A DNA stretch of 64,000 nucleotides from Dicyema japonicum (taxonomy: Eukaryota > Animalia > Dicyemida): positions 124,001 through 188,000 of the forward strand of contig RDEW01000035.1 of assembly GCA_011109175.1 (NCBI GenBank). The letters run 5' to 3'. Of this stretch, positions 818-60,690 are shown one piece after another. Under the pieces are notes generated by a model. It was not told where the DNA came from. It saw nothing but the letters and a program-made list of their open reading frames with translations, and did not search any database. The first letter of the stretch is position 1. The number at the start of each line of letters is the position of its first letter. Both the position numbers and the translations under genes were made by a program.

Positions 818-832
818 ATATTTATAATTTAG
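818..832 (+). repeat. 15-bp target site duplication ATATTTATAATTTAG (partner 3948-3962)
   Basis: Identical 15-mers flank the 833-3947 insertion. Confidence 0.85.
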
Positions 833-843
833 GGTTAGGGTTA
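829..843 (+). repeat. Short interstitial telomere-type repeat TTAGGGTTAGGGTTA
   Basis: 2.5 perfect TTAGGG units at an insertion junction. Confidence 0.7.
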
Positions 844-1047
844 TGTCCTCTGATGGGGTTTGGGGGAGTTAAATCCTTCCGCAATGAATTGTGTGAGGGT
901 TGTAAGGTGTGTTGTTGTCGAATGGTTATCCCGGAATCCGTGCTGGGTCGGAGGTATTGAGATTGAGTCTTGTATTTTTTCCAAAATAAGCCTTTCAAGG
1001 ATCCTTGAGACCGGACTTAGAATAGATATTGGGCGATAGGAAGATGG
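844..1047 (-). mobile_element. Inverted copy of LINE RT segment 2701-2903
   Basis: Reverse complement is near-identical to 2701-2903. Confidence 0.9.
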
Positions 1048-3947
1048 TTCTGCATATCAGTATTGCTTATTTTGTATCTAAATTAGCCAAGTCTCTGCTA
1101 TTTTCGGAAATCTCTTGTGGCTCGCCGACGACGTGCAGCATTTGAAAAAAAGAAACACACTTTCCCCTATCTTCACGGGTGGACCAATAAGGAAGGCCTG
1201 CGCCGCTGCGGAGACGTTGAGACAAACCCTGGACCAGCCAGAATAGTCCAACTGAACATAAATGGAATCAATAACAAAATATTTGAACTTCGGTCATTTG
1301 TGAAAGAAAATCACATTGATCTGTTGCTAATTTAAGAGTCTAAACTTTCTCCAAAGAGTTCAACACCAGTATTTCCGGGATTCACAGTAATTCGCCGTGA
1401 CAGAATTGGCAAACTTGGTGGGGGTCTTCTCACAGTTATCCGCAACGGCATTCCGTTTGAGGACTTAACCAACAGTGCTTACACTATGCTTAAAGGATAT
1501 GGAAATCTCGAACTTTTGGTTACCAAAATACGATTCCCAAGACTATCAATAATAATTGTCAACGCATATCTCCCACTGCTGAGTTCCTGCTCGTCCAGTG
1601 CCCCCAGACTCACTCCTCTCGCATCACTAAAGGATGTTATTATCTATGGTGACTTCAATGCGAAGCACCTACTGTGGCTGACAGAACAAACCTACGACAA
1701 AAGAGGGAAGATCATAATTGAGGACCACCACAGCCTATGTATACTTAACGATCCTGTATCTCATACAAGAACACCTACTCGACGTAATGATAAACCTTCT
1801 TCTATCAACATCTCATTGTCATCACCGTCCTTGGCCCCACTTATTGATTGGTCAGTGAAGTATGACACCAGGAGTGATCACAACCCAATATTTTTGGAGG
1901 TCAAAACAAGGTCACGGATAAAAGGACAACAATGCCCAACAATAATTAACTACAGCCTTGCGAATTGGAAAGGATTCAAGGAATACGTCGATAATTGTAT
2001 TGGACTATTAAATTTCCTCACTTTTCCCTCCGTTGAACAATTAGTGAAATGGTTCAACTCCATTATAAACGATGCGAAAAAGAAGTACATTCCTATGGGG
2101 AGACAACTAACGTCATCAAAACGTTTCAACACAACGACGAAACATCTGATCAGAGAACGAAATAATCTAAAGATGGTAAAATCGCCAACAGAAGAGAACA
2201 TCAGGAAAATACGAGAGTTGAACACAGAGATCGACAACAACATAAAGACAGAAAATGCCAATAGATGGACGAGACTATCGAAGGCTCTCTACAAAAACCC
2301 CCCAATGCAGAGAGTGTGGAAGTGGATCAAAAACATCAAAAGATCCTACCCAGAGAGAAAAGTCGAAGTCTACATAAAACCAGACACTTTGATAAAATAT
2401 TACACATCTATACCCTACAGGAAGTTTTCAAAAGAACACCAAGTATTCCTGAAAAAGATTGAATCGAAACGCTCCGATGACTGGATCCTATTTACTAGTC
2501 AGGATGTTCGCAGAGGCCAACAACTCAGAGGCCAAAGACCAGATAACATAACCACATGTGAACTGAAGCACCTAGGCCATCGAGCCCTGGAACTATTAGC
2601 CTATATCTTCAACCTATCCATTAACACAAATACAATCCCTGAAATATGGAAAAAGTCTCTAATCAGACCTATCCAAAAACCCAACAAACCAATAGATTAA
2701 CCATCTTTTATCGCCCAATATCTATTCTAAGTCCGGTCTCAAGGATCCTTGAAAGGCTTGTTTTGGAAAAAATACAAGACTCAATCTCAATACCTCCGAC
2801 CCAGCACAGATTCCGGGATAACCATTCGACAACAACACACCTTACAACCCACACACAATTCATTGCGGAAGGATTTAACTCCCCCAAACCCCATCAGAGG
2901 ACAGTACTTATATCCGTGGTCTTCACAAAAGCGTTCGACTCAGTCCCTAGGAAACTCCTAACAAAGAAAATATACGAAACCAACATCCATCCGAACCTAA
3001 AACTTTGGCTTGGAAACTTCCTAAATGGAAGACGAGCACAAGTACTCTGCAACAACGTCAAATCAAGATCTCGCTATTTCCCAAATGGAGTCCCTCAAGG
3101 CTCCCCACTATCACCCCAACTCTTCAATCTCTACATAAACGACATGCCACAAACCTGTAATGAAAACTGTCTAATCCTCTTCTATGCCGACGATTCATTC
3201 TTGCCTCCAAGAACAGAAGCATTCAATCATCGACTCAGTTGGCTCAACAATTGCTCGACAACCTGGAACTATGGCTCTCGAGCGGAGACTCGACACATCA
3301 GCAGCAAAGTCCTTTGTCACACTGTTTACCACCTACAAGAGACAGCTCTGTATCGAACCAAAAGTCTTTATGAAGAACGAAGTATCTCTATTAACAAAAC
3401 ACCGAAGATTCTGGGAGTATCCTTTGATCAGGGACTCACCTTTATCCGGCATGTTGAAAACAAAGTAACTTCTACGCTGAAAAAAATGAGAATTTTAAAA
3501 GTGCTCTCAAAAACACTTAGAGACCAAACTGGTGTCTTTGCCACGATTTACAAACAATTTATCCGACCAACGATGACGTATGCAAGTCCTTCATGGGCAA
3601 TGCAAATGTCACGATCTTCCTCATTGAAATTATTGGCAATCGAGGAGACTGCAATAAAGTTAATTGGACCAGATCACAATATCCAACCCATTGAAAACTT
3701 TTTAATCGAACTACAACGGAAACTATTAAAGGAGGCTATTCTACCGAGCTGCCCTCTATTCCAAATACTATCGAATTATCTACAATCATACAGAAATTTT
3801 GAGCCGATGCCATGTCCAATGAAAAGAGTTGTTCAGGATTCTCGACCCCGCCGGACTTGTCCTCACCTTTGTCGGTCTGGGCTCACTTAGTTAGATGAGA
3901 ATTTTTATTTCTTTCTCTTTGACCCAGTGATCCTGGGGGTAATAATA
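1048..3947 (+). mobile_element. Near full-length APE-RT LINE (family 1), degenerate, with 2A-like peptide
   Basis: GDVETNPGP then QLNINGI..GDFNAKH..SDH endonuclease; RT PQGSPLSPQLFNLYIND, YADD; (TAA)n tail. Confidence 0.92.
1210..1236 (+). other. 2A/StopGo motif GDVETNPGP
   Basis: Perfect D(V/I)ExNPGP consensus immediately before the APE domain. Confidence 0.85.
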
Positions 3948-3958
3948 ATATTTATAAT

Positions 3959-4043
3959 TTAGCGTGGCGTCATGTGGCTCACCGGATGCAACAATTCTGG
4001 AGGCGCTCAAAATACTCCTAAAGCATTTCCAAAAAGAGCCATT
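3959..4043 (+). ncRNA. Candidate structured 5' RNA element (pseudoknot), copy A; others at 7302-7375(-), 11665-11757(+), 50563-50630(-)
   Basis: Manual fold with compensatory changes across four copies. Confidence 0.6.
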
Positions 4044-6045
4044 AGCTCTCTTCCACCGGAGGTACATGTCTTCTCCGGTAATGGATAACTGGTCTGGCTA
4101 CAACTTCTCAGATTCGCAACCTACACAAGTCAAAGGACCGGATCTCAGTTATACAACTGAATGTGAACGGAATAAAAGGAAAAATTATTGAACTTAGAGC
4201 TCTGATTGTTAAACTTAAAGCTGACATCGTGCTCATCCAATAGTATCTTTTTGCTATCAGCAAAAGATACTACGCCCCTCTTTCCCGGATACAACATAAT
4301 GCGTGCCGATCGCACTAAGAAACGTGGAGGAGGACTACTTACATTACTCAGAAAAGGCATAAAGTATGAGGACCATACACTCGAAGCGAAGAAACTTTTG
4401 GGAAGTGATGAAACCACGGAGACAATCGGAATATCTGTTCGCACAACAAAAGGAAGACTATATTTTGTAAACATGTATATTCCGCCTCCGAGCTCATGTC
4501 CGAAACATTACATTATGCCGGACTTATCAGCACTGGAAATTTGGAACGAAGTTGTGATATGCGGCGATGTGAATGCCAAACCCTCTCTGACTGTTAAATT
4601 AGTCTGCAGATACAAGAGGAAATTTGCTGTTTACGCAGTCTGGCAATCTGACAATCATCAATGACCCATCAAAAAACACAAGAACACCTCAAAGGAACTC
4701 TGACAATCCTACCTCCCCAGATATCACACTCTGTTCACCACAGCTTTCAACAACGATTAATTGGTCCGTTATCTAAGACAACCGTAGTGATCATGACCCT
4801 ATTCTGCTAAAAATCAAAAGCGAAACTACCAATGGAAAGAAGAAACCTGCATATATATATATATACAATCGTGCAAATTGGCAATTATTCCGATCAGTTA
4901 CGGACCAACATTTGGCTAATATACAGCTGGAAAACTTTACCTCCCTTGATATAGTCGTTGCCTACGTCAACAAAGTCATCCTGGAAGCAAGAACAATGGC
5001 TGTCCCTAAAAGATATGTCGTTTACACGAGAGAGTACGAAAGGAAGGCTTTGGTCAAGGAACGAAACCGTCACAAAAAATCAGGGATCCGTTCCTCCGAA
5101 GCAAGGATCCGTCTAAAAGTGCTGAACGAGGGAACAAAAGCCAATGAATTCAAAATAACATTGAAAATCTACCAATCAGATATCCCTGAAAACCTCAAAC
5201 GCTGGCTGAGAAACTTCCTTAGCGGACGGAGAGGTAGAGTGTACATTGGAAACATTCATTCTGTCTCCTGTTACCCCAGGGTTCTCCGCTATCACCATTC
5301 CTATTCAACCCATATACAGCTGACATTCCGACGCCGAATGGAGAAGACGACCTGCTTCTGGCTTATGCAGACGATATCGTCCTAGCCTCACGGGATCAGA
5401 ACACCCAAACAGCGACGGAAACAACACCACATAGATCGACTACTTAAGTGGTTTAATGAAAATCGGATGTCAATCAATACCGAAAAATCTGTTACAACTC
5501 TATACCTTGGACAAAAGATTGTCGAACAGGACAATAGAAGTTACTGCGGAAAGAAGAGCATTGCCGTTCAGCAAATGGCAAAAAATATTGGGTCTGATTT
5601 TCGATAAACACATGAACTTTACGAGACACGTCACTAACGTGCTAAACAAATGCGAGAAGAAAATCAACCTTCTGAAATGCATAACAGGTCTATGGAAAAT
5701 TGGACATCACCCTATACTTAAAACTCTCTACTCACAGTACATCGAACCATGCATTTCATATACGTGTACTTCATGGGGTTCACTGATCTCTTATACGAAC
5801 ATCCAGAAAATCTCTGCAACCCAGAAAAAAGCCTTCAAACTAACCGAGAGATGGTATACAGGGGAAAACATTAAATCACCGACACACATGGAGAAACTAA
5901 TCGAAAAAAAACAAAAATGGACACCAATTCCAGCAACGAACTTGTGTAAGCTCAAGGGATCAACACCGAGCAAAGATGAGAGCCTTGATCCAATTCGTCG
6001 GGATCACAGTTTAGTTTTTTCGGTTTAACAGTGGTCTTTGGAATT
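3959..6045 (+). mobile_element. APE-RT LINE copy A, internally deleted
   Basis: QLNVNG endonuclease (4206..4664), RT pieces (4912..5385, 5456..6028), 3' stem-loop. Confidence 0.85.
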
Positions 6046-6059
6046 AATTTTAATTTGAA

Positions 6060-7090: not shown

Positions 7091-7375
7091 CCTAGCCAAG
7101 GCGTTTGATCGAACATCAAGGCAGGTTCTAAGTAACAAAATATTACCTGTGACTTCATTAATGCTTAGACTCAGTAAATTCAGAAAAGTTCTGTGTCCAG
7201 GATTCTGTTTAACATCTCCAAAAGTGACAAGTCGCACCAGAAAAATGCTCGACGTGTAGGCAGTGCATTTTAGGATGAACTCTTCTGGATGGTTGCTCAT
7301 TAATGATTCTTTTAGATACAATTTAGGATTGTTTATAACGCCACCAGAGATGGTGAACTACATTACGGACGCTAA
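7090..7375 (-). mobile_element. 5' end of LINE copy C with degenerate 2A
   Basis: TTAGCGT 5' motif, GDVKQNPGH, start of endonuclease-like LNLLSLSINEV. Confidence 0.7.
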
Positions 7376-7522
7376 AATTTTTATCGTAACATTTTATAAA
7401 TAATTTTCAATCGCTTTAATAAAATAATTTCTAAAATAAAATAATATTTTTTAACTTTTTAAAAAATTTCAATTAATAATATAAATTAATGTCACGTTTA
7501 ATATTTTTTGTTAATTCTCGTT

Positions 7523-8830
7523 ATGCATAAACTGAGTTTGCATTATTTATCAAAGATAGAACATAATGAAGAGAATAAAATTTCGTTTAATTCTGATTAC
7601 GACGATGAAAGGTTTTAGTTGTTCTGGATTTAAATTTTATGATCATTAGTTTTGATATTTTACTTTAGTGTTTGTTCCGGAATTGAAAGAGTGAAGGAAT
7701 TAGAGATGACAACTTCTGAACGTTTAATATAATATTTATTATTAGCGAAAAGGGTTTCCCAGTTCATTTCTCATAATGATTTTCAATTAGAAAATGATTC
7801 TACTAAATCAACTTTATCTCAATTTGGTTTGAATTATATATATCTAACTCTATTGTAGAAATATATGATGTTCTAATAAAATCCAGAATCAAACTTCACC
7901 AAATAATTATTTTGGCTAATTCATTACCACATACTCTACAGTATGATTACATTATTAAAAAAGTAAATCAAGACGTTACTAATAATATTGACTTTGTAAT
8001 TTCTATTTAATCAAATATTTAGTGCAGACTCTGTTGAATCATCGATAAGTACTTCTTCAGATATTGCTGATTTTCTATCAAAGTTTGTTAGCGAAAAAAG
8101 AATGTAAATTTTGTTTTGTATTTAATTCTAGTGATAATGAAATGTCCAAAAATCCTGATAACACATATAAGATTATGACGGATTATCGGTTCATTTAATG
8201 ATTTGATGTAGTTCTTTAATATTACAAGATTGGTTTGATAAAACAAGATTATCAGTCACTAAAATGAAGAAAAATGATTTTTCTATTTTTGAAAAGTCGC
8301 CAGTTGTACAGATAGAACAAGTTGTATTTTAATACACGAATATAGATCATGTCCGATCCTGATCGCTTGATAAAAAGAACTCAAATGAATCGCTTAAAAA
8401 TTTTTTCTATTGGGAGCGCTGAAAGAAATATTAAGATTAGTGATGTTCGAGATTTGAAACAAGACGGAACTCTGTATCATTTCGATAATGAAATTTTTGA
8501 CGAATCGGATTTTTATCAAAGTCAACTTAGTGATTTTATTAAACAAAAAAGCAATTCTAAACAAACTGATCGGTCATTTTTTTGTGATCGTAGAAAATCT
8601 CTCCAGTCTCAAACTCATTTTAAAATGGACCGCCCTGTTGACTTAAGAGCTACTAAGTCTAGAAAAATAAAGTTATTTTTATTTAACTGTTAGATACAAT
8701 GTCATTAAGAAACTTGCTGGATTCTGCACTCCTGTTGATACTAGCATATGGATTGATGAATCAATGTATTTTATTTTAGTAGTTTTATAGGAATGAACTT
8801 TTTGATTCTTTGTTTGGTAAAATTTATTAA
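7523..8830 (+). CDS. AATF: AATF/BFR2 (SSU processome factor), multi-exon
   Basis: IYDVLIKSRIKLHQ, LQDWFDKTRL, DNEIFDESDFYQ, VDLRATKSRKIKYNV, NELFDSLFG after splicing introns 7722-7745, 7827-7858, 7996-8022, 8104-8131, 8189-8211, 8321-8345, 8672-8693, 8766-8790. Start codon and one frame junction near 8000 are unresolved. Confidence 0.88.
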
Positions 8831-9678
8831 ATTTGTTGTTTCTACAAATTTTTTTGTATTTAAATCAATCTTAAAATGAAAATGTGATATATTTAATTTT
8901 CATGACTCGTTTATTATATCATGAACTGGTTTATGGTTTCCATGCAACAATTACTCAATAATAATTATTGGACTTTCATTCAACAAAATGTAATCACAGA
9001 TGTACCAAACTCGAAAATATCTTTTCCACTAGCTTCTTCCAAATCTTCAACATTAGGTCATACCTCCAAGCATATTAATTTTGTCTAGTTTTTAGATATT
9101 TTAGACTGTTTCATGCTTTGTAATGAGGTAGCTTTTTAGTTATCTTGACCAAACTGATACCAATTGGCAATTTTAGTTATCTTCTATGAAATACTTCAGG
9201 AGTTGGTTAGTTAGTTCAGATTCTGAAGCAGTTCAGATCATTGAATGCGAATGCATTTAAAAAACACCGGCTAAAGAAGCAAACAAAAAAATGTTGTATT
9301 CGCGACAGCCTTTACTATCTAAAACGAGGATCTGTTATTATGTCGACTAATAAATTACAATTTGTAATGTTACTTGTAGAAAATATCCATTTAAAAAAAT
9401 AAATCTCAGAAAGTTTTTGACCTTTTGTGTGTAACAATTGTTTTCCTCTATGAATTCGACCGTGCAGTGGCTGCGATTTCTACTTACTCCGGGATGTCTC
9501 GGTCATCCGACTCGAAAACGCAATTTTTCTTGGCTCTCTATATACTACAGTAATTTGTCAATTTTCCTGGAGGAAAAATGCATCCTTTCAACATTTCACA
9601 TCAAATTTAAAAACCCTGGAGTCCCAACGTCTTTATTCTTCCTCAGGAATTTTAACCTTACGCCCCCTTCTTTTTTCT

Positions 9679-9792
9679 ACGGACAGCCATGTTTCACGGA
9701 CATAAACTTCTTAAGAGTCATCAACGATACTCTTCTCTTCAACGGACAGTCCCATGTTTCACGGACATTAACTTTTTAAGAGTCATCGACGA
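9679..9792 (+). repeat. Two-copy tandem duplication, ~63 bp period
   Basis: acggacag..ccatgtttcacggacat..ttaagagtcatc.acga twice. Confidence 0.8.
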
Positions 9793-10085
9793 GCAGCTAA
9801 GGACTGCCGTTGAAGAAAACACTCAACATTTCTTCTGATGAAACTGGTTGGATCAAATGCAAACTACCGCTTCGCTTCGGAGAAATCGGAATACGATCAC
9901 CACCAGAACTCGGCATTTCTATCTTCGTCATATGCTTCCAGTGGTCTTAAAAACCAGATCCTACGCTACATTAACGAATCGGATGCTGAACCAGTGGCAT
10001 GCTCCGGATTTCCTGTCCAATTAAAACCTCTTGGATTTGCCCCTGCCAACCGAAGACCGGACGGAACTACTTTCTTCCTATCGTT
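9793..10085 (+). mobile_element. CRE-type REL retrotransposon remnant
   Basis: GWIKCKLPLRFGEIGIRSP and ANRRPDGTT resemble the element at 21593..22837. Confidence 0.65.
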
Positions 10086-10860
10086 TGAGCGCATTTCCTT
10101 TAAGTCAGGGGAAATGTGTTCTCAATTGAGGGCAGCAAGTAGTTTGAAATGTTTGCTAAGTCATTTCAGTCTAGGCCATTTCTACACGCGAAGAAAATAT
10201 TGTATTTCTTGTTTTGTCAATGACTGGGAGTGCAATGGAAAAAGTGATGTGCGATAAATGTGTTTTATTCAAAGAATTACTTAATCGATTGTGTCTCCCT
10301 GAACGTCATATTTCTTTGTTTCGCAGCTTTTACATTCAGATAATTTCTTATAAAGTTAAAAAACATACCTTTATTTCTCTCCCCTGAGACAACTTTTTTG
10401 TATTAACTTTTTTTTTCATTAGGCAGCCGAGCACACTTGTAATATCTCTTCGACGACATCTCTTGGAATCAGACCACACTTTCCGTTAGATTTGGTGGCC
10501 TTTGAAATTCGTTCTTCTCTAATCTAGAGGATTCTGCACTCCTTTCATTGATTTCTTTGACCTGGACGTTTGTAGCCTACAGGAGATCTAGATTAGTACA
10601 TATTCATTCTTCCATTTCCAATTCGAAGAGAGTCTGGACAAGAAATCTGCTTACAAGAAATCTTTCAAAAAGCTGATGGAGTCCTTGAACCAACACCACT
10701 CTGCTTGTCTGTTGCCGGAGCGTCTCCTGAAAGTGGTCTGGCTCAACGCCATTTCAAGTGAAATATTATGAGTTTTTCTGGAGAGACTTAGTTAGAGTTG
10801 TGAGTCTCACTTTGTTTAATCGTTTATTCCTGTAAATAAGGTATTAATTATCATATAATG

Positions 10861-11359
10861 TTAAATATCGAATTTATTCCTACGTTCATATTCATCTATT
10901 GATTTTTTATGCTTCATTCTTCTGTTCTGGAACCAGATTTTAACTTGTTTGTCCGTAAGATTAACATCTTTTGAAATTTCATATATCCTTTCTTTAGAAG
11001 GATATTTATTTGTAAAATATTCTTTTTCCATTTCCAATACTTGTTCATGTTTATGACAAGTTCTTGAAGAATATGCATTAGCTAATTTCATGAATTATAC
11101 GCTTTTACAATTTATTTTTTGAGTCATCCATGGATAGATTTCTGTTTGATTTTGATAAATTTGTTCACTGATTTTAGTGAATTCAGTTGAATTTTCAATT
11201 AGAGACGTCAGATTTGGTGGAAATGAATGCGGGTCTATATTTTTTTTATTTTTAGTTTGAAAGGAAGTATCTTTTGTTTGCTTCTAGAATAAAAAAAGTT
11301 TATTTTGTAAACCTTTTCAGAGTTTTTAAAATATTTTTTCTAAACGACCCGTCTTGCAT
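10861..11359 (-). CDS. Divergent Hox-class homeobox gene with YPWM hexapeptide
   Basis: EIYPWM, a 27-nt intron (11082-11108), then in-frame homeodomain ..[25 protein letters not shown]; intron 11284-11312; exon 1 needs one extra A in a homopolymer. Confidence 0.9.
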
Positions 11360-11664
11360 TAAAAAAACAATGAAAATGAATTTATGATTTATTATAATTT
11401 CAAAAGTTTAATTAATCATACTGCCATAATTTTTCAAAATTTTTTTAATAATGCATTGTTTGAATAAATTGTATTCACATTGCATTTTAAAGTTTCTCGT
11501 TTGTTCTTTGATAAGATTTTTACCTTTTAATAATTTTATAGTTATTTTAATATAAAATATTATAATTTAAAACTAAACAAAAAGTTTGATTCACGATATT
11601 TTTAAAGTGAGTCTACTTTAAAAAATTTATTCAATTAAATTCATATTTTATGATATTTTTATTT

Positions 11665-13935
11665 TTAGCGTGGCGTTATGTGGTCCACCAAGTCAAAAAA
11701 TTCAAAAGGATTTGGCAACGCCCAGAGGCTTCTAATGCCTTCCCGAAAAGGATCATTAGACCCTTTCCTCCCGGGGTCATTATCGACCCGTCGACGTGTT
11801 TCAAAAAAGTCCAAACATTCCCGGAGAAAACCCTCAGCCCACTGTGGAGAAAGGAAATTTACTGCTCTCCAATTGAACATCAACGGAATTAAAGGCAAGG
11901 TCAGGGAACTCCGTTCAATCTTGGCAAAGCAGAGATCGACGTGGCTATGATCCAAGAAACTAAACTCCGCATGAATGATCCCACTCCTTCATTCCTTGGA
12001 TGCGAGGCTATCAGGATGGACCTTAAAAAGAGAAGAAGGGGCGGACTACTTACTCTATTCAAAAAGAAACTGAAATGCAGAGATATTACTTCAAAACTGA
12101 GGAAACTTGTTGGAAATGACGAGGTTACTGAGGCAATCGGAATCTCGCTTGGGACAACAAAAGGAAGTCTGTGCCTCGTAAATATCTACTTGCATCCTCT
12201 TGGCTCCTGCCCAAAGGACTATGTTATCGCAAGCCTATCAAGATTGGCTATCTACGAGGAGATCATCATATGTGGAGAAGCACCCCTTATGGTTGTCAAC
12301 CCAAAAGGCCGACACGAGAGGGAAGCTATTGTTATGGAAAACGGACTCCCTGACGATACTTAACCTTACGCCCCCAGCAAAAATACAAGGACCCCACTCA
12401 GAGAGACGGATCAGCCAACCTCTCCTGACGTAACACTCTGCTCCACATCACTTTCATCGAAAATTACCTGGTCAGTCTTCTACGAAGCAAGAAGCGATCA
12501 TCACCCGATTGTGATGAAGATCAAGAGACAAGTCAAAGAGAGGAGAACACCCACTAGTTATAATTACAAAGCTGATAATTGGGAATTGCATCGCGCAATC
12601 TCGGATGATAGACTGAAAAATTGTTACTCGGACAGCTTCAAATCGTTAGAAAAAGCGATCAAATATTTTACTTGCAAAATCCTAGAAGCAATATCATTGG
12701 CTATTCCCAAGCATCGCCTAAATTCGGTCGAGGAAGTCGGCATTGGTAAAAGAAAGAAATCACCTCAAAAAATCTAATTGGTGTTATATTATTATTATTA
12801 GAAACGATACTCCGGATCAGAGCTCTAAACAACGAAATAAGGTCAGAGACTTCAAGGCCCAGAAATTGAAGTGGAATCGGATTCTTACAAAGTAAATCGC
12901 AACCGTAGTACCGGAGAAGTGTGGAAAGCCATCCGAAATGTTGCAAAGGACGAAGAAACTTCTCCGAGGATGACTATACTCAACGAGACGTTAACAATTT
13001 GATAAAATTCTACACAAAAATTTCGTACAAAGAACACATGAAGTCGCAAGTGCTTCTCTCTTCACGCAAAAAACTGAAGAAGGATTCTAACCCAGTTTAC
13101 TTCTCGGATGAAGACGTGAAGAATGAGCTGCGTTTTACAAGAACAACGTACTCTGCCGGTCCCGACAACATTCCAGTAGTGTTATTGAAGAACCTTGGAG
13201 ATATGGGAGTCGGTTTTCTAACGTCGGTCTACACTATTCAATTAATTGGAATATAATACCGTTGTTATGGAAGCAAGCCAACATCCGACCTATACTGAAA
13301 CCTGGAAAACCTAAGGAAGATCCGGCATCATTTAGACCTGTGTCATTGTTATGTTCCGTATCGAAAATCCTGAAGAGGCTTGTGCTTGGGAGAATCAAGG
13401 TTTTCTTACCAGAAAAGGATTTTCAACACGGATTCAAGAGCGATTGTTCTACATTAACGTACCTACAGAAATTAACAAACTTCATTAGAGATGGATTTTC
13501 GAACAAACCAAGGCATTTGAAAACAGTCTTATGTTCCATTAATATTAACAAGGCCTTTGATTCTATTTCGAGAAAAATATTATCAAAGAAAATTTTCCAG
13601 TCGGAGATCCCGGGGAAGCTTAAACTTTGGATAACAAATTTCTTAAGTGGACGGAGGGGACGTGTATGCCTCGGATGACTGAAATCAGTCTCGCGTCTTC
13701 TCCCAAACGGTGTCCCCCAAGGATCTTCTTTATCCCCCGTCTTATTCAATTTATACCTGGTCGACCTACCGACACCGGAATCCAATAACGATGTTCTACT
13801 CTCATATGCGGACGACATTGTTTTGGCCTCGCGTGATCGGGATATCCAAAATGCTACAGAAAGATTACAAATTAACCTGGACCGACTCAACGCCTGGTAA
13901 TGGTTTTACCGTGGTCTTAGGTGTTAAATAAATAA
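11665..13935 (+). mobile_element. APE-RT LINE copy B, degenerate
   Basis: ORF from ATG 11678 runs into LQLNINGIKGK; RT FQHGFK..VPQGSSLSP..YADD; 3' ccgtggtcttagg(taaa)n. Confidence 0.88.
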
Positions 13936-22914: not shown

Positions 22915-24249
22915 TATCTTCAACCTATCCATCAACAGGAATAAAATCCATGTAATATGGAAGAAGTCTCTAATCAAACCTATTAGAAAACCTAACAAGC
23001 CAATAAATGAACCATCTTCCTATCGAAAACCTAACAAACCGATAAATGAATCATCAATATCTCTATTTTGAGTCCGGTCTCAATAATCTTTGAAAGACTT
23101 GTTCTAGAAAAAGTACAGGATTCAATCTCAATTCTTTCGACCCTGCACGGATTCCGAGGGTAACCATTCGACCACAACACATCTCACAACTCTCACACAA
23201 TTCATTGTGGAAGGATTTTACTCCTCCAAACTTCAAAGAACAGTACTTATATCCCTGGACATCACAAAGTATTCGACTCAGTCGCCAAGAAACCTATTAC
23301 AAAAAAGATATTTGAAACGAACATCAACCCGAAGTTGAATCTTTGACTTACCATTGTAAGCCCATCAAAAACAGTCATAACTAACTAATCAAAGGAAGGA
23401 ACCAAAAGGAGAACATCTGCTTGTGCCGACCAAATCCATCTTCCAATACTTCATTACATGTTTCCGCTTCCGAAAAGAGGTGGAGAAGTAGGTTCGCCTC
23501 TTCCATTTTTTGTGATACCTTCCAAATGGAGTCCTTCAAGACTCCCCACTGTCATCCCAACTCTTCAACCTCTACATAAACAACATGTCACAAACCTTTA
23601 ATGAGAACTGTCTAATCCTCTCCTACATCAACGATATCATCCTTGCTTCCAAGGACAGAAGCATTCAATCAGCGACTCTGTCCGCTCAAAAATGTTTGAT
23701 AAGCTGGAACTATGGCTTTCGAAACGGAGGGTCGACATATTAGCAACAATGTCCTCAGTTACGCTATTTACCACTTACAAAAGAGAGCTCAGTGTCGAAA
23801 CGAAAAATCCTTATAAAGAACGAGGCTATTCCTATTAACAAAACACCGAAGATTCTAGGAGTCACCTATGATCAGGAAGTCTCTTTTATCCGACACGTTG
23901 AGAACAAAGTGTTCTCTGAAGAAAATGAGAATTTTAAAAGTGTTCTTGAAAACATACTGGGAGTCTTGCCACACTTTATGAACAATTTATACGACCCACG
24001 ATGACGTATGCAAGTCCATTGTTTGCGATTCAGATTTCACGCTTTTAAATTTTGGGAATGAAGAGTAGGTAGAAAGTCAAGACTCACGAACGAGGTGAAT
24101 CAGCTCGGCGTGTTTTGGTTTAATTCCATTAATGTTGAGTTTTTTTTTTGGTTGAGGTGGTGACGTCCCTCTATAGCACATATGTCTATCTCACGTCTAA
24201 TATCTAACTGCCCTTTTTCTGTGGGTACCCTGAATGTAAGAGGAGTCAA

Positions 24250-48359: not shown

Positions 48360-50630
48360 AATCGAGAGGTTTTACTTGTGTTCTTCCAGAGTACCCACGG
48401 CTTTCCTGTATCGACGACGATCATCTTTCATTAAGAGTTGAAGGGGGGTAGGTTTTTCTCCCAATTTACGTGTATTTGAGGCTTCTAGTCTTAAATGGAA
48501 GAAACGACTTGTCTCATGACCACTCAGACCGATGAAACCGGAGCCGTTGTTTTTGATTGAGGCGTGATCAAGAATTGGGGGAAAGATCGGCAGGTAGATT
48601 TGTTTGACGTGCAAGTTTGCCTGTTAGGGAATTGATCTTGTATAAATTGGATATTGAAACTCCATAAGCCCATGAGGCACAAGCATACTCTACCGTCGGT
48701 TTTAGAAATTAATTGTACAAGATGACAGCGCATTCCCGTGACGGCCTGGACTTTAAGAGCGGTTTCATTATATTCAGTTTCTTGAGATCCTTTGTCATAA
48801 AGTTCTTCACATGTTGAGAAGATGTCATCAAAAGGTCAAAAGTCACTCCCAGAATAGTTGGATGAATCTGTAAAGGTAAAGAGTATCCATATATGCTCAA
48901 ATCCAATGTATATTTTTCTTTTCTGTCTGTGGTGAAGATAGCATACGTTGATTTATCCCTGGATATGGAGAGACGATTCAAATTCAACCAGGCTCCCAGG
49001 TCATCAATATGTGACTGAAGCTCTGATTTTGCCATTTCCACGTATTTGCTCCTACTAGCGATAATTAAGTCGTTAGCATATGTGTGAAGCATTGAATCTA
49101 ATCCTCCAATGCAGGGTAAATCGTTTAGGAATTAATTGAATAACGCCGGAGAGAGAGGCGATCCTTGAGGGACGCCATTTGGTAGAAGACGGGACCTCGA
49201 TCTTGCATGGCCTATATAGACAAGTCTTCTTCCGGAAAAAATTGGCTATTCATCTTTTCAAAGTCAGCTGAATGGTGGTGTCAAAAACTTTTTCGTGAGT
49301 AATGTTCTCGGGACAGAATCAAACGCCTTCTGTGTGTCCAGGAGACCAATTTTTTCCGTAGATGGCGTTTCGGTTCGTTGAACCCTTCTGTTATAAATTG
49401 AGACAGTGAAGTCAAATATGTCGTAGTTGAACACTCACATTCGAAACCATGTTGGAATTGGCATTCGGGCAAATGGAGTTTAATTTTCCAGAGTACAAGT
49501 TTCTCAATTAGACGCGAAAATACGCACGTCAATGAAATGAGGAGACGCTTCTCCGAGTCCAGAGTAGGCTTGTAAAATTTGTAAACTGCACGTGGGACAA
49601 ACAACTTATCAGCTCGAAGGATTACATGGTTTAGATGGTCCACTGCTTTGTCGATGGAGCAAAATGAGCTGGGATCAAAATGTATTAGGTTATGGTCAAT
49701 GAAGAGCTTGAAATTTGACAGTCAGCTTTCTTGTAGACCTTGAAGGTTGCTTTTTTTACGTGAGTTATTGAATCGGCTCAGATTTATTATAATCGGATTA
49801 TGATCACTATGAAAATCGTAGGAGACGTTCCATGAAATCTTCGGGGCAATCCTAGAGAAGGCAAATGGATATGTCGGGGGAGGTTAGGTTGTCATTTCTT
49901 CGGACTGTGTCCTTAGAAGATGTTCGGGTGATTCAGAATCGCCATTTTTTCGAGAGAGTTGATAATTAGACTCCCCCTTTGTCTGCTGACTGGGTATTGA
50001 ACCATTGCGGATGTTTGGCGTTGAAATCCCCACATAGTAAAACATTTCGAATTTCGTGCTGTTTGTCGAGCTTCGGAACATAGTTATTAGGACAGGATCC
50101 CGGCGGGGAATGTAATTGTTGATTAGAATAGGATGTTCTGACCCATTAATAAGATCAATTGAAATTTGTTCCGCGGTCCTGTCGTGTAGAATTAAATCAT
50201 CCACTTGCGAGCTCACATCATGGATGGATAAACCGTTTTTAATAATAGTAAGTAAGCCCCCACCACGTCCAATACGGTCTTTCTGATAGAGATGTATCTA
50301 GGAAAAAGTGGGGTTGTACTCTTTGTAGAAAGTTTTGACTCCTGGATAAGGCAAATGTCACTCTTGTGCTTCGTTGATAGACATCGTAACTCCAGAATCT
50401 TTGTTTTATACCGTTAGCATTGAGTTGCATAATAACAAGGTTTTTGGTCCTGGGTTTTGTTCAATATCTCCAGAAAGCAATAGAATCCAGGGGAACAAAC
50501 AACATCTCGAGTCTCCAGTTGAGGTATACCATCCAGGCATACGAAAAGTCTGGATAAGGAAAAATGGTTCTTTGGGTATTATTCGACACTGAGCCCCACC
50601 ATAAAAGGTGAACCCATGACGCCACGCTAA
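48360..50630 (-). mobile_element. APE-RT LINE copy D with 5' RNA motif and 2A
   Basis: ILLLSGDIEQNPGP (50445-50471), NNYIP endonuclease, FQHGFE, VPQGSPLSP, YAND. Confidence 0.87.
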
Positions 50631-53600: not shown

Positions 53601-55139
53601 GCCACATAGCACCACATGGCGGCACGCGGCTTTAAAATTAAAATAACTTTTAATTTTAAAGCCAAATTATTATAATTCCGGATTTGGGCTTAAAACATGC
53701 ACTTTTTATGGTTGCTTTTGACTATCAAATTCATAGGATTTAACTTAATTTGCCTAAACTTTTCTGGGTTCCACACTTGCACATATTTTGGCTCTGCAGG
53801 ACTTGCATACAATGTCTGAAACTTAAGTCCCCCAGGGACCAAAAAATACAACTTTGAGTTTTTGCATTTATTGATTGATGTGGCGTGACCTTGAATGCTA
53901 ATTTCCAAAGCTTTAACTTAACTTTAATTCAATTTCCCACTCCAGGCCATCAATTATTATAGAATAAACTAAGTTTATGCTTTGGGAAAATCAATTGACT
54001 GCTAGCCCGGAAAAGTCGGTGTTGACCTTATTCACGACAAACAGAAGACTAGGGAAAGTATCAATTGAATTTTGTCTTTTAATGAGTTTCGATTGTCGCC
54101 TGAAGGCGTTCTTGGGAAACTTAAGAGACAAAAAAGATCTGAGTGGACTGGATGTCATATACAAACAGTTCATCGGGGCTACAATAGGATACGCATGTAA
54201 TGTCTAGGGATCTAACCTTGCTGCAACGAATTTGTACAAGATCTGCAATATTCAACTGAAGGCAGCGAACCTACTAAGGATATTTTCAGAAACCTTGAAA
54301 ATATGCAATAAAATATTTAATATTTGAAATCATCATACTCGCGTATTGTATCACTCATCTGACTATTTGACTTAAATTTTGAATTATATTATTAATGAGG
54401 TCAGAGATGAGTCACATATTATTTAATATGGATCTTGCTTCTAAGGGTGTGAACTCATCATTATGTTTCTTTTTAGCCGGCCAATCAGCAGCTAGGTGAA
54501 CATATAAAGGCACGTCACAACCTTATTTTTTTCTTACAGTCACCTTCACTAGTCTCGTATATAAACATAGTCATCATTTTAAGGTTAAAATTGTCTCGAT
54601 ACTAATCACCTGGGATGACCTTGTAACATCAAGTCCGTGAGTATACGACAGGTCACTGAATATCAGCGAAAGGACAAATATTCAACCTCTCACAACAACA
54701 ATCAATGTTTTGCGGCGGAATAGAGAGCTTAATGAAGTAATCAATGAGATTCACTCTCGGTTTGATAGGAAAGAATTTTATGAGAATAGTGAAGGAGATT
54801 GTGCTGGATCGCATAATCTTCTAGCATGGTATTTACATGTGGTCTTATGAATTAAGATTGCTTGTTTATCAAGTTCATAGATAATCCTAGCGTTCGATTT
54901 GTAGAAATGTTTAGCTGGTCTACTATGGCAAAGCTCTAATGCACTCAATTTCTTCATCCTCTCAAAGTGATTGTAACCCATTAATGGTTCAGGAGGTATC
55001 GGGTATGCAAACATTAGGAAATAAGGAGACATTAACGTTTGTTGGAATCTCGTCTGTCACAAAAATAGTATAAAATTTGTTATTGCAATCAATATTGAAT
55101 ATAAATCAATGTTGAATTGGCTTATTTGATGTTAAATTT

Positions 55140-58914: not shown

Positions 58915-59214
58915 AATCAAATTGTGGCGGTTGATTTTAAATTTAAATAGTCTCAAAATTAATCTTTTGAATTAATTAATATAACTTAAATAAATTTAAC
59001 AAAATGACAATGATAAACAAATTTAAAACTAACTAAGGATTTTAGATGCTGTTTTCAGAGAAGGTGGTCTTGAAAATTTCGGCAGCCGTCCTGTACGTTC
59101 ATGTGCGGGCACGAAGGAAGAACACCGGGCAAAGATGAGTTCTTTGTTAGAATGCATCGGGATCACGTGATTATTAGTTTGCTTTTACCGTGGTCTTGAA
59201 TTAAATAAAAAAAA

Positions 59215-60690
59215 GTATGCCGACGATGTGGTTCCATTTGGAAAAAAAGCTATACTTTTATCCTTACGAAATGGACCAACAAGGAAGCCTGTGTCGATGT
59301 GAGATATTGAAGCAAACCTAGTCCAGCCAGAATAGTTCAACTCAAAAATAAATGGAATCAAGAACAAGATACTTTAACTTGGGAGTTATTTGAAAGAACA
59401 CCGCATCGACATGTTGTTAATTCAAGAAACAAATTTTCCCAAAAAAATGCCACACCAAGATTTCCGAGATTCATTCATTCGTCGTGACAGATCACGGAAA
59501 CTTGGTGGACCTCATAGTAATTCGAAACAGAATTCCTTTGAGAATATAACTGACAATGTCCACACTATGCTTCACTAGTATGGAAATCTCGAATTTGTGG
59601 CTACCAAATCCGATTCCTAAGACTTTCAGTAACATTTTTCAACGCACATCTCCCGCCTTTGAGTTCCTGCTCCTCTTGTGCTCCCAGATTCTCTCACTTT
59701 ACTGAAAGATGGGATTATCTGTGATGGATTCAATGCGAAGCACCCATTGTGGTTGACGGGACTAGCCCATGACAAAAGGGGAAAGATGAGAATTGAGGAC
59801 CTTCATAATCTCATAATAAAACTTATTCAAAAAACCTAACTAATAATGAACCAATGTCCTATCCCAAAATCTATTCTGAGTCCGGTCTCAAGGATCATCG
59901 AAAGGCTTCTTCTGTACAGATTCATCTCAACACCTCGACCCAACACGGATTCGGGAACTATCGATCACAACCCTTACGTAATTCATTGCGGAAGGTTTTA
60001 ACTCCCCCAAACCCCATCAAATGACAGTATTTATATCCGTGGACATCACAAAAACGTTCGACACAGTCCCCAGGAAATTCCTTAAAAAGAAGATATTTGA
60101 AACGAACATCCACCTGAACTTGAAGCTCAAGTACTCTGCAACAACATCAAATCAAGATCTCGCTATTTCCAAATGGGGTCCCTCAAGGCTCACCACTCAC
60201 ATTTACATAAACGACATGCCACAAACTTGTAATGAGAACTTTCTAATCCTCTCTTACAGCGACGATATCATTCTTGCCTCCAAGAACAAGTGCATTCATT
60301 TAGCGACTCAGTCGACCGACAAATGTTTGAAAATGGAACTGTAGCTCGAGAATCGAAGATTGATACATCAGGTACAAAGTCCTCTGTAACCCTGTTTACC
60401 ACGTACAAAAGACAGCTCTGTGTCGATCCAAATATCCTTATGAAGAACGAGGCTATTCCTATTAACAAAAACAATTCTGAGGTCACAAATGATCAGGGAC
60501 TCTCATTTATCGACATTTGAGAACAAAGTAAATTCTGCTCTGAAGAAAATGAGAATCCTAAAAGTGATCTCAAAAACAGTCAAAGACTAAACTGGGAGCC
60601 TTGTCAGTTTATGAACAATTTATCCGACCCACGATGACGTATGCAAGTCCTTCATAGGAAATGTAGATTTCACACTCTTTGTCATTCAAC
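59215..60690 (+). mobile_element. Family-1 LINE copy, heavily deleted, with degenerate 2A
   Basis: Collinear with 1120-3600; GDIEANPSP-like 59301-59325; preceded by another LINE 3' stem-loop at 59160-59210. Confidence 0.85.

Follow-up and report, generated by a model that had tools for sequence, protein, structure and literature searches.

A conserved, high-copy structured head at the 5' end of LINEs of Dicyema japonicum, with the helix order of HDV-like ribozymes

The head motif and its host LINEs

The window, that is, the whole stretch of 64,000 nt of Dicyema japonicum DNA that was analysed, contains four copies (A to D) of a head of about 85 nt, each located at the 5' terminus of a decayed APE+RT LINE. 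A first reading made from the sequence alone had proposed these four copies and a layout common to them; all are present at the expected coordinates, our segmentation reproduces the sequence exactly, and the segments follow one helix order, P1-P2-P3-P1'-P4-P2'. The layout starts with TTAGCGT, continues through a 6-nt P1 strand of the GGCGTC type, AT, a 7-nt P2 strand, an A and the P3 hairpin with its CC..GG closure, and ends with one base, P1', CA, the P4 hairpin, a C-C-A-A-A strand, P2' and (C)ATTAG.

Copy A lies on the forward strand (+). Its leader TTAGCGT (3959-3965), identical in A-D, stands upstream of the P1 5' strand GGCGTC (3966-3971), whose partner GGCGCT (4002-4007) pairs with it over 6/6 positions, with G.U at both ends, and is the unique best among 67 windows. 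The J1/2 segment AT (3972-3973) spells, with the start of P2, the conserved ATG. The P2 5' strand GTGGCTC (3974-3980) pairs 7/7 with the P2 3' strand GAGCCAT (4036-4042). A single A separates P2 from the P3 hairpin, made of CCGGA, a 9-nt loop and TCTGG (3982-4000), helix 3 being paired in 100% of its cells in the CM-fitted alignment; the CC..GG at the base of P3 is conserved and the remainder varies among the copies. The P1 3' strand is preceded by an A and followed by the J1/4 segment CA (4008-4009), the P4 hairpin AAAT, 11-nt loop, ATTT (4010-4028), which fits flush between CA and CC (p ~0.009), and the J4/2 strand CCAAAAA (4029-4035). The C-C-A-A-A strand recurs in B, D and most copies of the C family.

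In copy B (11665-11756, +), P1 pairs 11672-11677 with 11717-11722 and P2 pairs 11680-11686 with 11750-11756, the hairpins P3 and P4 occupying 11688-11715 and 11725-11741. In copy C (7303-7375, -), P2 pairs 7361-7355 with 7309-7303, P3 lies at 7353-7344 and P4 at 7332-7318; the strand homologous to P1 (7368-7364) has lost its pairing, but AGCGTC at 7373-7368 pairs 6/6 with 7342-7337. In copy D (50564-50630, -), P1 pairs 50623-50618 with 50597-50592 (5/6) and P2 pairs 50615-50610 with 50570-50565 (5 bp); P3 lies at 50608-50599, P4 at 50589-50576 and the J4/2 strand CCAAA at 50575-50571. A possible fifth, much-decayed head, GCCGCGTGCCGCCATGTGGTGC (53610-53643, -; nhmmer E=0.25), stands ahead of a decayed LINE-like ORF; only its first ~22 nt resemble the motif, and the fold is not recoverable there.

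The proposal that these heads are the 5' termini of divergent LINEs is borne out by the coding context, with RT downstream and APE-like starts and 2A-like peptides just after the head. The host LINEs are decayed and single-ORF. RVT_1 domains were found downstream of copies B and D, and endonuclease-like starts of the LQLNINGIKGK type lie within 200-300 nt after the head. Three 2A/StopGo-like peptides, each just ahead of the endonuclease domain of an ORF1-less LINE, read GDVETNPGP (1210-1236, +), GDVKQNPGH (about 7215-7190, -) and GDIEQNPGP (about 50470-50444, -); such peptides stand upstream of the endonuclease in copies C and D. The nearest database RTs are 33-41% identical to those of the window LINEs. 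No head was present at six other RT-relative loci, and a search with the N-terminal peptide found no further copies.

A relative in the octopus and the genomic copies of the head

An HMM built from the four copies matches a contig of Octopus sinensis, reached through an RT relative (VCDQ01001570.1, 23887-23783, E=2.6e-7). The octopus head is 72% identical to copy B and presents the full layout: P1 GGCGTT with AACGCC, P2 GTGGTCC with GGACCA, a 7-bp P3, P4, and the J4/2 strand CGAAAAA. It reads ACG in place of ATG and TTAGAAA in place of TTAGCGT, so that neither the AUG nor an alternative 5'-terminal P1 (AGCGT) is needed for the fold. About 150 nt beyond the head lies a LINE-type 3' end, 78-82% identical to the window tails at 5996-6038 and 59153-59217; the whole (23660-23887, -) is an ORF-less, non-autonomous head+tail element of ~230 nt. 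A second candidate on the same contig (13528-13592, E=0.16) was not counted, having neither P1 nor P2, and the 120 loci returned by a metagenome scan with a 16-mer were all chance matches. The window, in which a Hox gene is present, resembles a dicyemid genome. Since D. japonicum was collected from O. sinensis (PMC6736024), the family may be common to parasite and host by transfer, or by cross-contamination of the assemblies; a related head in a contig of the host octopus would, in the former case, point to an exchange of retrotransposons between the two.

The octopus copy bears directly on one function suggested by the sequence-only reading, that of a translation element. The pseudoknot would present the AUG at the P1/P2 junction, or recruit ribosomes to the ORF just after it, and the 2A peptide would then remove the junk leader. 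The ATG is indeed conserved in all four window copies; in copy B (11678) it is a true start, opening an ORF of 90 aa that continues into the start of the endonuclease, and the LINE ORF of copy C, with its 2A-like peptide, starts at 7300, 3 nt after P2'. HDV-like folds reportedly promote the translation of LINE ORFs, a result said to be that of Ruminski et al. in 2011. The role is not general, however: the motif ATG is the start of the LINE ORF in B alone; in C a TAG comes directly after it, in D it begins a 12-codon uORF, and in the octopus it is replaced by ACG, in an element that keeps the fold though devoid of any ORF. We consider a translation-start element unlikely.

Contigs from four runs of the source sample were mapped onto positions 7250-11800 of the window. 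The B head reaches 70-120x the single-copy depth and the C head about 17-20x. A repeat between them (9378-10137) stands at 8-60x the single-copy depth, and its genomic copies show many internal deletion joints. In most copies of the B family position 11753 is C, which converts the G.U of copy B's P2 into G-C. Most C-family copies carry, in the sense of the element, A at 7319 and C at 7314, which gives them the CCAAAA strand of the other families. In one variant of the C family P4 reaches 8 bp, with U-A in place of a C-G pair.

The two families differ in what precedes the head. In the B family the flanks diverge before 11666 (agreement 0.57), giving a sharp common 5' boundary with diverse flanks, from which it follows that the repeat includes (T)TAGCGT; the bases upstream of P1 are kept in A-D and in at least nine B-family contigs. 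In the C-like family, 16-21 contigs extend upstream of TTAGCGT with a shared sequence (7376 onward; agreement about 0.8) that ends ...GCTTGAATTG and whose median loose length reaches up to 161 nt. This sequence is absent from the 64-kb window and may represent either the head of a SINE-like element or an extended 5' UTR. The head is thus mostly internal in the C-like family, which comprises a long form with the shared upstream sequence and a short form beginning at the head.

The 5' junction of copy A abuts a neighbouring 5'-truncated LINE (818-3962) flanked by a perfect 15-bp TSD (818-832 = 3948-3962). The right copy of the TSD ends at G3962, inside the leader of copy A (TTAG|CGT), so that TTAG overlaps the TSD. 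The left duplicate also closes with TTAG, and a filler of the TTAGGG type (GGTTAGGGTTA) runs on from it in the same register. Judging by a weak resemblance, a decayed duplicate of those TSD bases may follow the 3' tail of copy A near 6040-6052. TTAG may be derived from the target or represent a junction microhomology, the element proper then starting at AGCGT or CGT; either start leaves 3-7 conserved bases ahead of P1. A T-rich stretch ending in TTAG precedes all five heads (3959, 11665, 7375 and 50630 in the window; VCDQ01001570.1 23880). This junction also resembles a 3' splice acceptor and matches the right TSD end of the neighbouring LINE; it may reflect a preference of the endonuclease, a microhomology at the junction, or a part of the transcript.

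Conservation of the RNA fold

In the four window copies, P2 forms 7/7 pairs in A and B, 6/7 in C and 5/6 in D; P1 forms 6/6 in A and B and 5/6 in D, and in C it can be formed solely through the upstream AGCGTC, as the sequence-only reading had it. In A and B no other downstream window, or hardly any, complements the 5' strands as well as the designated P1' and P2' do. The same reading had announced covariation in P2 and the persistence of P3 and P4 in spite of changes in sequence and length. Compensatory double changes do occur in P2, at two positions, and both hairpins hold their place in A-D; the extension of P2 had been described as ATG with CAT, and it actually consists of G.U, U-A and G-C (GTG with CAT).

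In a hand alignment, 46/50 cells of P1 and P2 are paired, versus 18-29/50 when the partners are slid. Column shuffles of this alignment reach the observed value in 149/5000 cases for pairing and in 108/5000 for covariation, and P1 alone is not significant by these shuffles. In the CM-fitted alignment, 93% of the cells are paired, versus 80% in the shuffles, 0/500 of which reach the observed value, and 35-48% after sliding. Nine pairs of that alignment change on both sides; a displacement of copy D by one column inflates three of them, so that about seven pairs, distributed over P1, P2, P3 and P4, show genuine compensatory changes, the basis being four window copies and one close relative, the octopus head, and hence few independent events. 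The strongest single feature for the fold is P4: four sequences unrelated to one another each form a hairpin there that fits flush against the conserved CA and CC on its two sides (p = 0.002-0.024 each). A CM built solely from B and the octopus copy, which scores its own members at 109.7 bits (B) and 124 bits (octopus head), recovers A at 60 bits, C at E=0.026 and D at E=0.39, with no other match in the window.

These results have to be weighed against the possibility that the head functions only as DNA, as an internal promoter or transcription-start region with target-site bases, the pairings being coincidental. The topology itself is common: a loose double-pseudoknot descriptor finds ~700 clusters per strand of the window and a tighter one ~70, and generic RNABOB-style descriptors were dropped from the cross-species search as unspecific for this reason. 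The nested MFE folding of the heads is no better than that of shuffled sequences (z -0.4 to -1.3), and the case for the fold therefore rests on conservation at homologous places. The first 16 nt (TTAGCGTGGCGTCATG) are nearly invariant, beyond what pairing requires; the P1 5' strand is fixed while its partner varies (GGCGCT, AACGCC, GGGGCT, GGCGTT) by wobble-preserving changes, which suggests that the sequence of the head is under a further constraint. The indels between copies are not multiples of three, so that coding does not account for the conservation. The near-invariance of the first 16 nt, the commonness of the topology, the folding energies and the failure of P1 alone to reach significance would suit a purely DNA-level role. 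Against it stand the hairpins P3 and P4, which keep their place despite a complete change of sequence and length, the compensatory double changes in P2, and the recovery of A and C by a model trained on B and the octopus copy. We give little credence to a function confined to the DNA. The head is a real, conserved, high-copy structured 5' head of LINEs.

A possible role of the head and its relation to known systems

The sequence-only reading had compared the fold with HDV-like ribozymes, and both halves of its comparison stand: the HDV-like helix order holds in A, in B and mostly in D, and in C via the upstream AGCGTC only, and the P1.1 pairing is missing in A-D and in the octopus copy. In the five copies, L3 offers no complementary letters for P1.1 that span the copies, and J1/4 reads CA in A, B and D, ATAA in C and GA in the octopus. 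P3 ranges from 2 to 7 bp, with loops of 4-18 nt devoid of any shared letter, a departure from the canonical 3-bp P3 and 6-8-nt L3; in A, B and the octopus it closes over L3 as a hairpin of 4-7 bp. By its letters, J4/2 starts with the C equivalent to C75, followed by purines, in A (CCAAAAA), B (CCCGAAAA), D (CCAAA) and the octopus (CGAAAAA); copy C reads ATCT, and most of its family has the C at 7314. The base of P1 is G.U in A and D and G-C in B and the octopus. A hand search for a canonical HDV core in other registers, with P1 taken from AGCGT or CGT and P1.1 formed with the UG of L3 or of the AUG, found none. Rfam, to which the earlier reading had pointed as a check of novelty, gave no family at the gathering score in the window and no ribozyme family at E<=10 for any of the five copies (HDV, drz-Agam, CPEB3, twister, twister-sister, pistol, hatchet, hammerhead). 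Twister, hatchet and pistol are excluded on this ground, and twister also by comparison with its core letters (PMC8501958). As far as its sequence tells, the head is not a canonical HDV-like ribozyme and appears to be a new variant of the HDV-like theme, sharing its helix order.

Could such a variant still cleave? An active self-cleaving ribozyme, either HDV-like without P1.1 and with an extended P3, or of a new class with the same helix order, would release the LINE RNA from read-through transcripts and define where it begins. The helix order and the junction letters are HDV-like, and ribozymes of this kind occur at the 5' ends of six LINE clades, among them Ingi, which has a 2A peptide (PMC5786205, PMC3185411); 2A-like peptides are present here too. 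The sharp boundary of the B family with its diverse flanks would be expected of such a cut, the long and short C-like forms look like precursor and product, and in the octopus the bases before P1 differ (AAA versus CGT) while P1 is intact. L1TcRz, furthermore, is active with a single-pair P1.1 (PMC3185411). On the other side, P1.1 and any conserved L3 letters are missing, P3 is a longer hairpin in A, B and the octopus, and Rfam recognizes no ribozyme family. The position at which HDV-like ribozymes cut does not vary: it is the 5' base of P1, adjacent to the critical L3/P3 site (Eickbush and Eickbush, PMC3774820), so that an RNA cut there could not transmit TTAGCGT; the bases upstream of P1 are nevertheless conserved in four families and in the B-family contigs, whose repeat boundary is at 11666 and not at the P1 base (11672). 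Moving P1 to the terminus does not help, as the alternative strand AGCGT is less well paired in A, B and D, and the octopus copy has no such strand. The shared sequence upstream of most C-like heads also argues against efficient cutting at the head. Of the earlier proposal of an aberrant HDV-like ribozyme or an undescribed fold, the helix order is retained, and the ribozyme part is at odds with the unconserved P3/L3 region and with the bases kept upstream of P1. We regard self-cleavage as possible, though doubtful. A bolder form of it, a ribozyme of a new kind with the HDV helix order and a different active site (no P1.1, a P3 of free length, the CCAAA strand lying on P1), cutting a few bases upstream of P1 at the true 5' end and common to the LINEs and SINE-like elements of both a parasite and the cephalopod that it inhabits, seems unlikely.

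The model that we tentatively prefer, ahead of these, is built by analogy with other LINEs and sees in the head a 5' recognition module that acts in cis and is related to the HDV-like fold; its first 16 nt, which are invariant, would have an additional, sequence-specific role. The ~85-nt head would form the 5' end of the transcripts of a superfamily of single-ORF APE/RT LINEs and of the short head+tail elements derived from them. Its RNA would fold as a nested double pseudoknot in which the 6-bp P1 interlocks with the 7-bp P2, the variable P3 hairpin standing at the P2/P1' junction, and the variable P4 and the C-C-A-A-A strand lying in the long loop before P2'. This fold would mark the full-length template for the element's own protein, thereby allowing head+tail derivatives to be copied; the recognition by the protein is modelled on that of the R2 5' pseudoknot, and Vingi-type template RNAs likewise carry a 5' UTR. 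The fold would descend from, or converge on, the HDV-like ribozymes of other LINE clades, and the first 16 nt would probably fulfil a second job, such as the start of transcription or the formation of the 5' junction. The recognition model agrees with the reuse of the head, which is kept in the ORF-less octopus element, joined directly to a LINE 3' end, and is internal in most C-like copies; such reuse and internal position are argued by Kojima to be incompatible with an efficient 5' ribozyme (PMC5786205). Counter to the recognition model, the HDV-like details of the sequence (the AU of J1/2, the CC/GG base of P3, the C and As of J4/2, the G.U of P1) leave some probability to catalysis.

Either outcome would matter. 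Were the head to cleave, the requirements of the HDV fold for catalysis would have to be drawn more widely. Otherwise, an HDV fold would have been retained for another cis function, for example template recognition or 5'-end joining, which is relevant to the question why head+tail parasites arise from some LINE clades and not from others, and to the presence of 5' UTRs in engineered Vingi/RTE 'writers'. HDV-like descriptor searches, furthermore, require P1.1, and a family like this one would be missed by them.

The closest parallels are the HDV-like ribozymes of R2, R4, R1, RTE, LOA and Ingi/L1Tc, which share with the head the location at a LINE 5' end, the P1-P2-P3-P1'-P4-P2' order, a GC-rich 6-bp P1, a short J1/2 (here AU), a CC/GG base of P3, a variable P4, a J4/2 made of C and then As, and, in A and D, the G.U at the base of P1. 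They differ from the head, known from its sequence, in possessing P1.1, a conserved L3 and a match in Rfam, whereas here P3 extends over 2-7 bp and the genomic copies conserve bases upstream of P1. The R2 5' pseudoknot offers the analogy for the proposed mechanism, being a pseudoknotted 5' RNA with a cis role in integration; R2, however, is site-specific with a restriction-like endonuclease, and its 5' RNA is a proven HDV-like ribozyme that binds the R2 protein, protein binding being ascribed to the head by analogy. In Schistosoma, the twister T-variants of Perere-3 (PMC8501958) are likewise a structured, possibly catalytic 5' RNA of an ORF1-less LINE, with microsatellite-like tails and in a parasitic spiralian; their core letters are absent here, no Rfam twister match is found and the fold is different.

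The reuse of the head in the octopus head+tail element recalls the pieces of Vingi and RTE 5' UTRs found in SINE bodies and in bipartite non-autonomous LINEs (Kojima 2018, PMC5786205). Among LINE 5' ends, those of RTE and Vingi alone recur in SINE bodies, where a working ribozyme would truncate the SINE (PMC5786205), and Vingi template RNAs are built with both UTRs, 5' and 3' (PMC13708176). In the literature examined no structure is described for the Vingi head, and the likeness to Vingi is one of analogy. Finally, Pr77/L1TcRz of the trypanosomatid L1Tc/ingi elements is, like the head, a 5'-terminal module of ~77-90 nt common to LINEs and to their short non-autonomous derivatives, followed in some families by a 2A-type peptide and conserved beyond the needs of pairing. 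Pr77 differs in that it cleaves at its own first base, with a 3-bp P3 and a P1.1 of 1-2 bp (PMC3185411), and the host here is an animal, the likeness being one of description and not of sequence comparison. In Pr77/L1TcRz the head is both promoter and fold (PMC3383444, PMC4748587), and the conservation of the Dicyema head beyond the needs of pairing would fit such a combination of promoter and fold.
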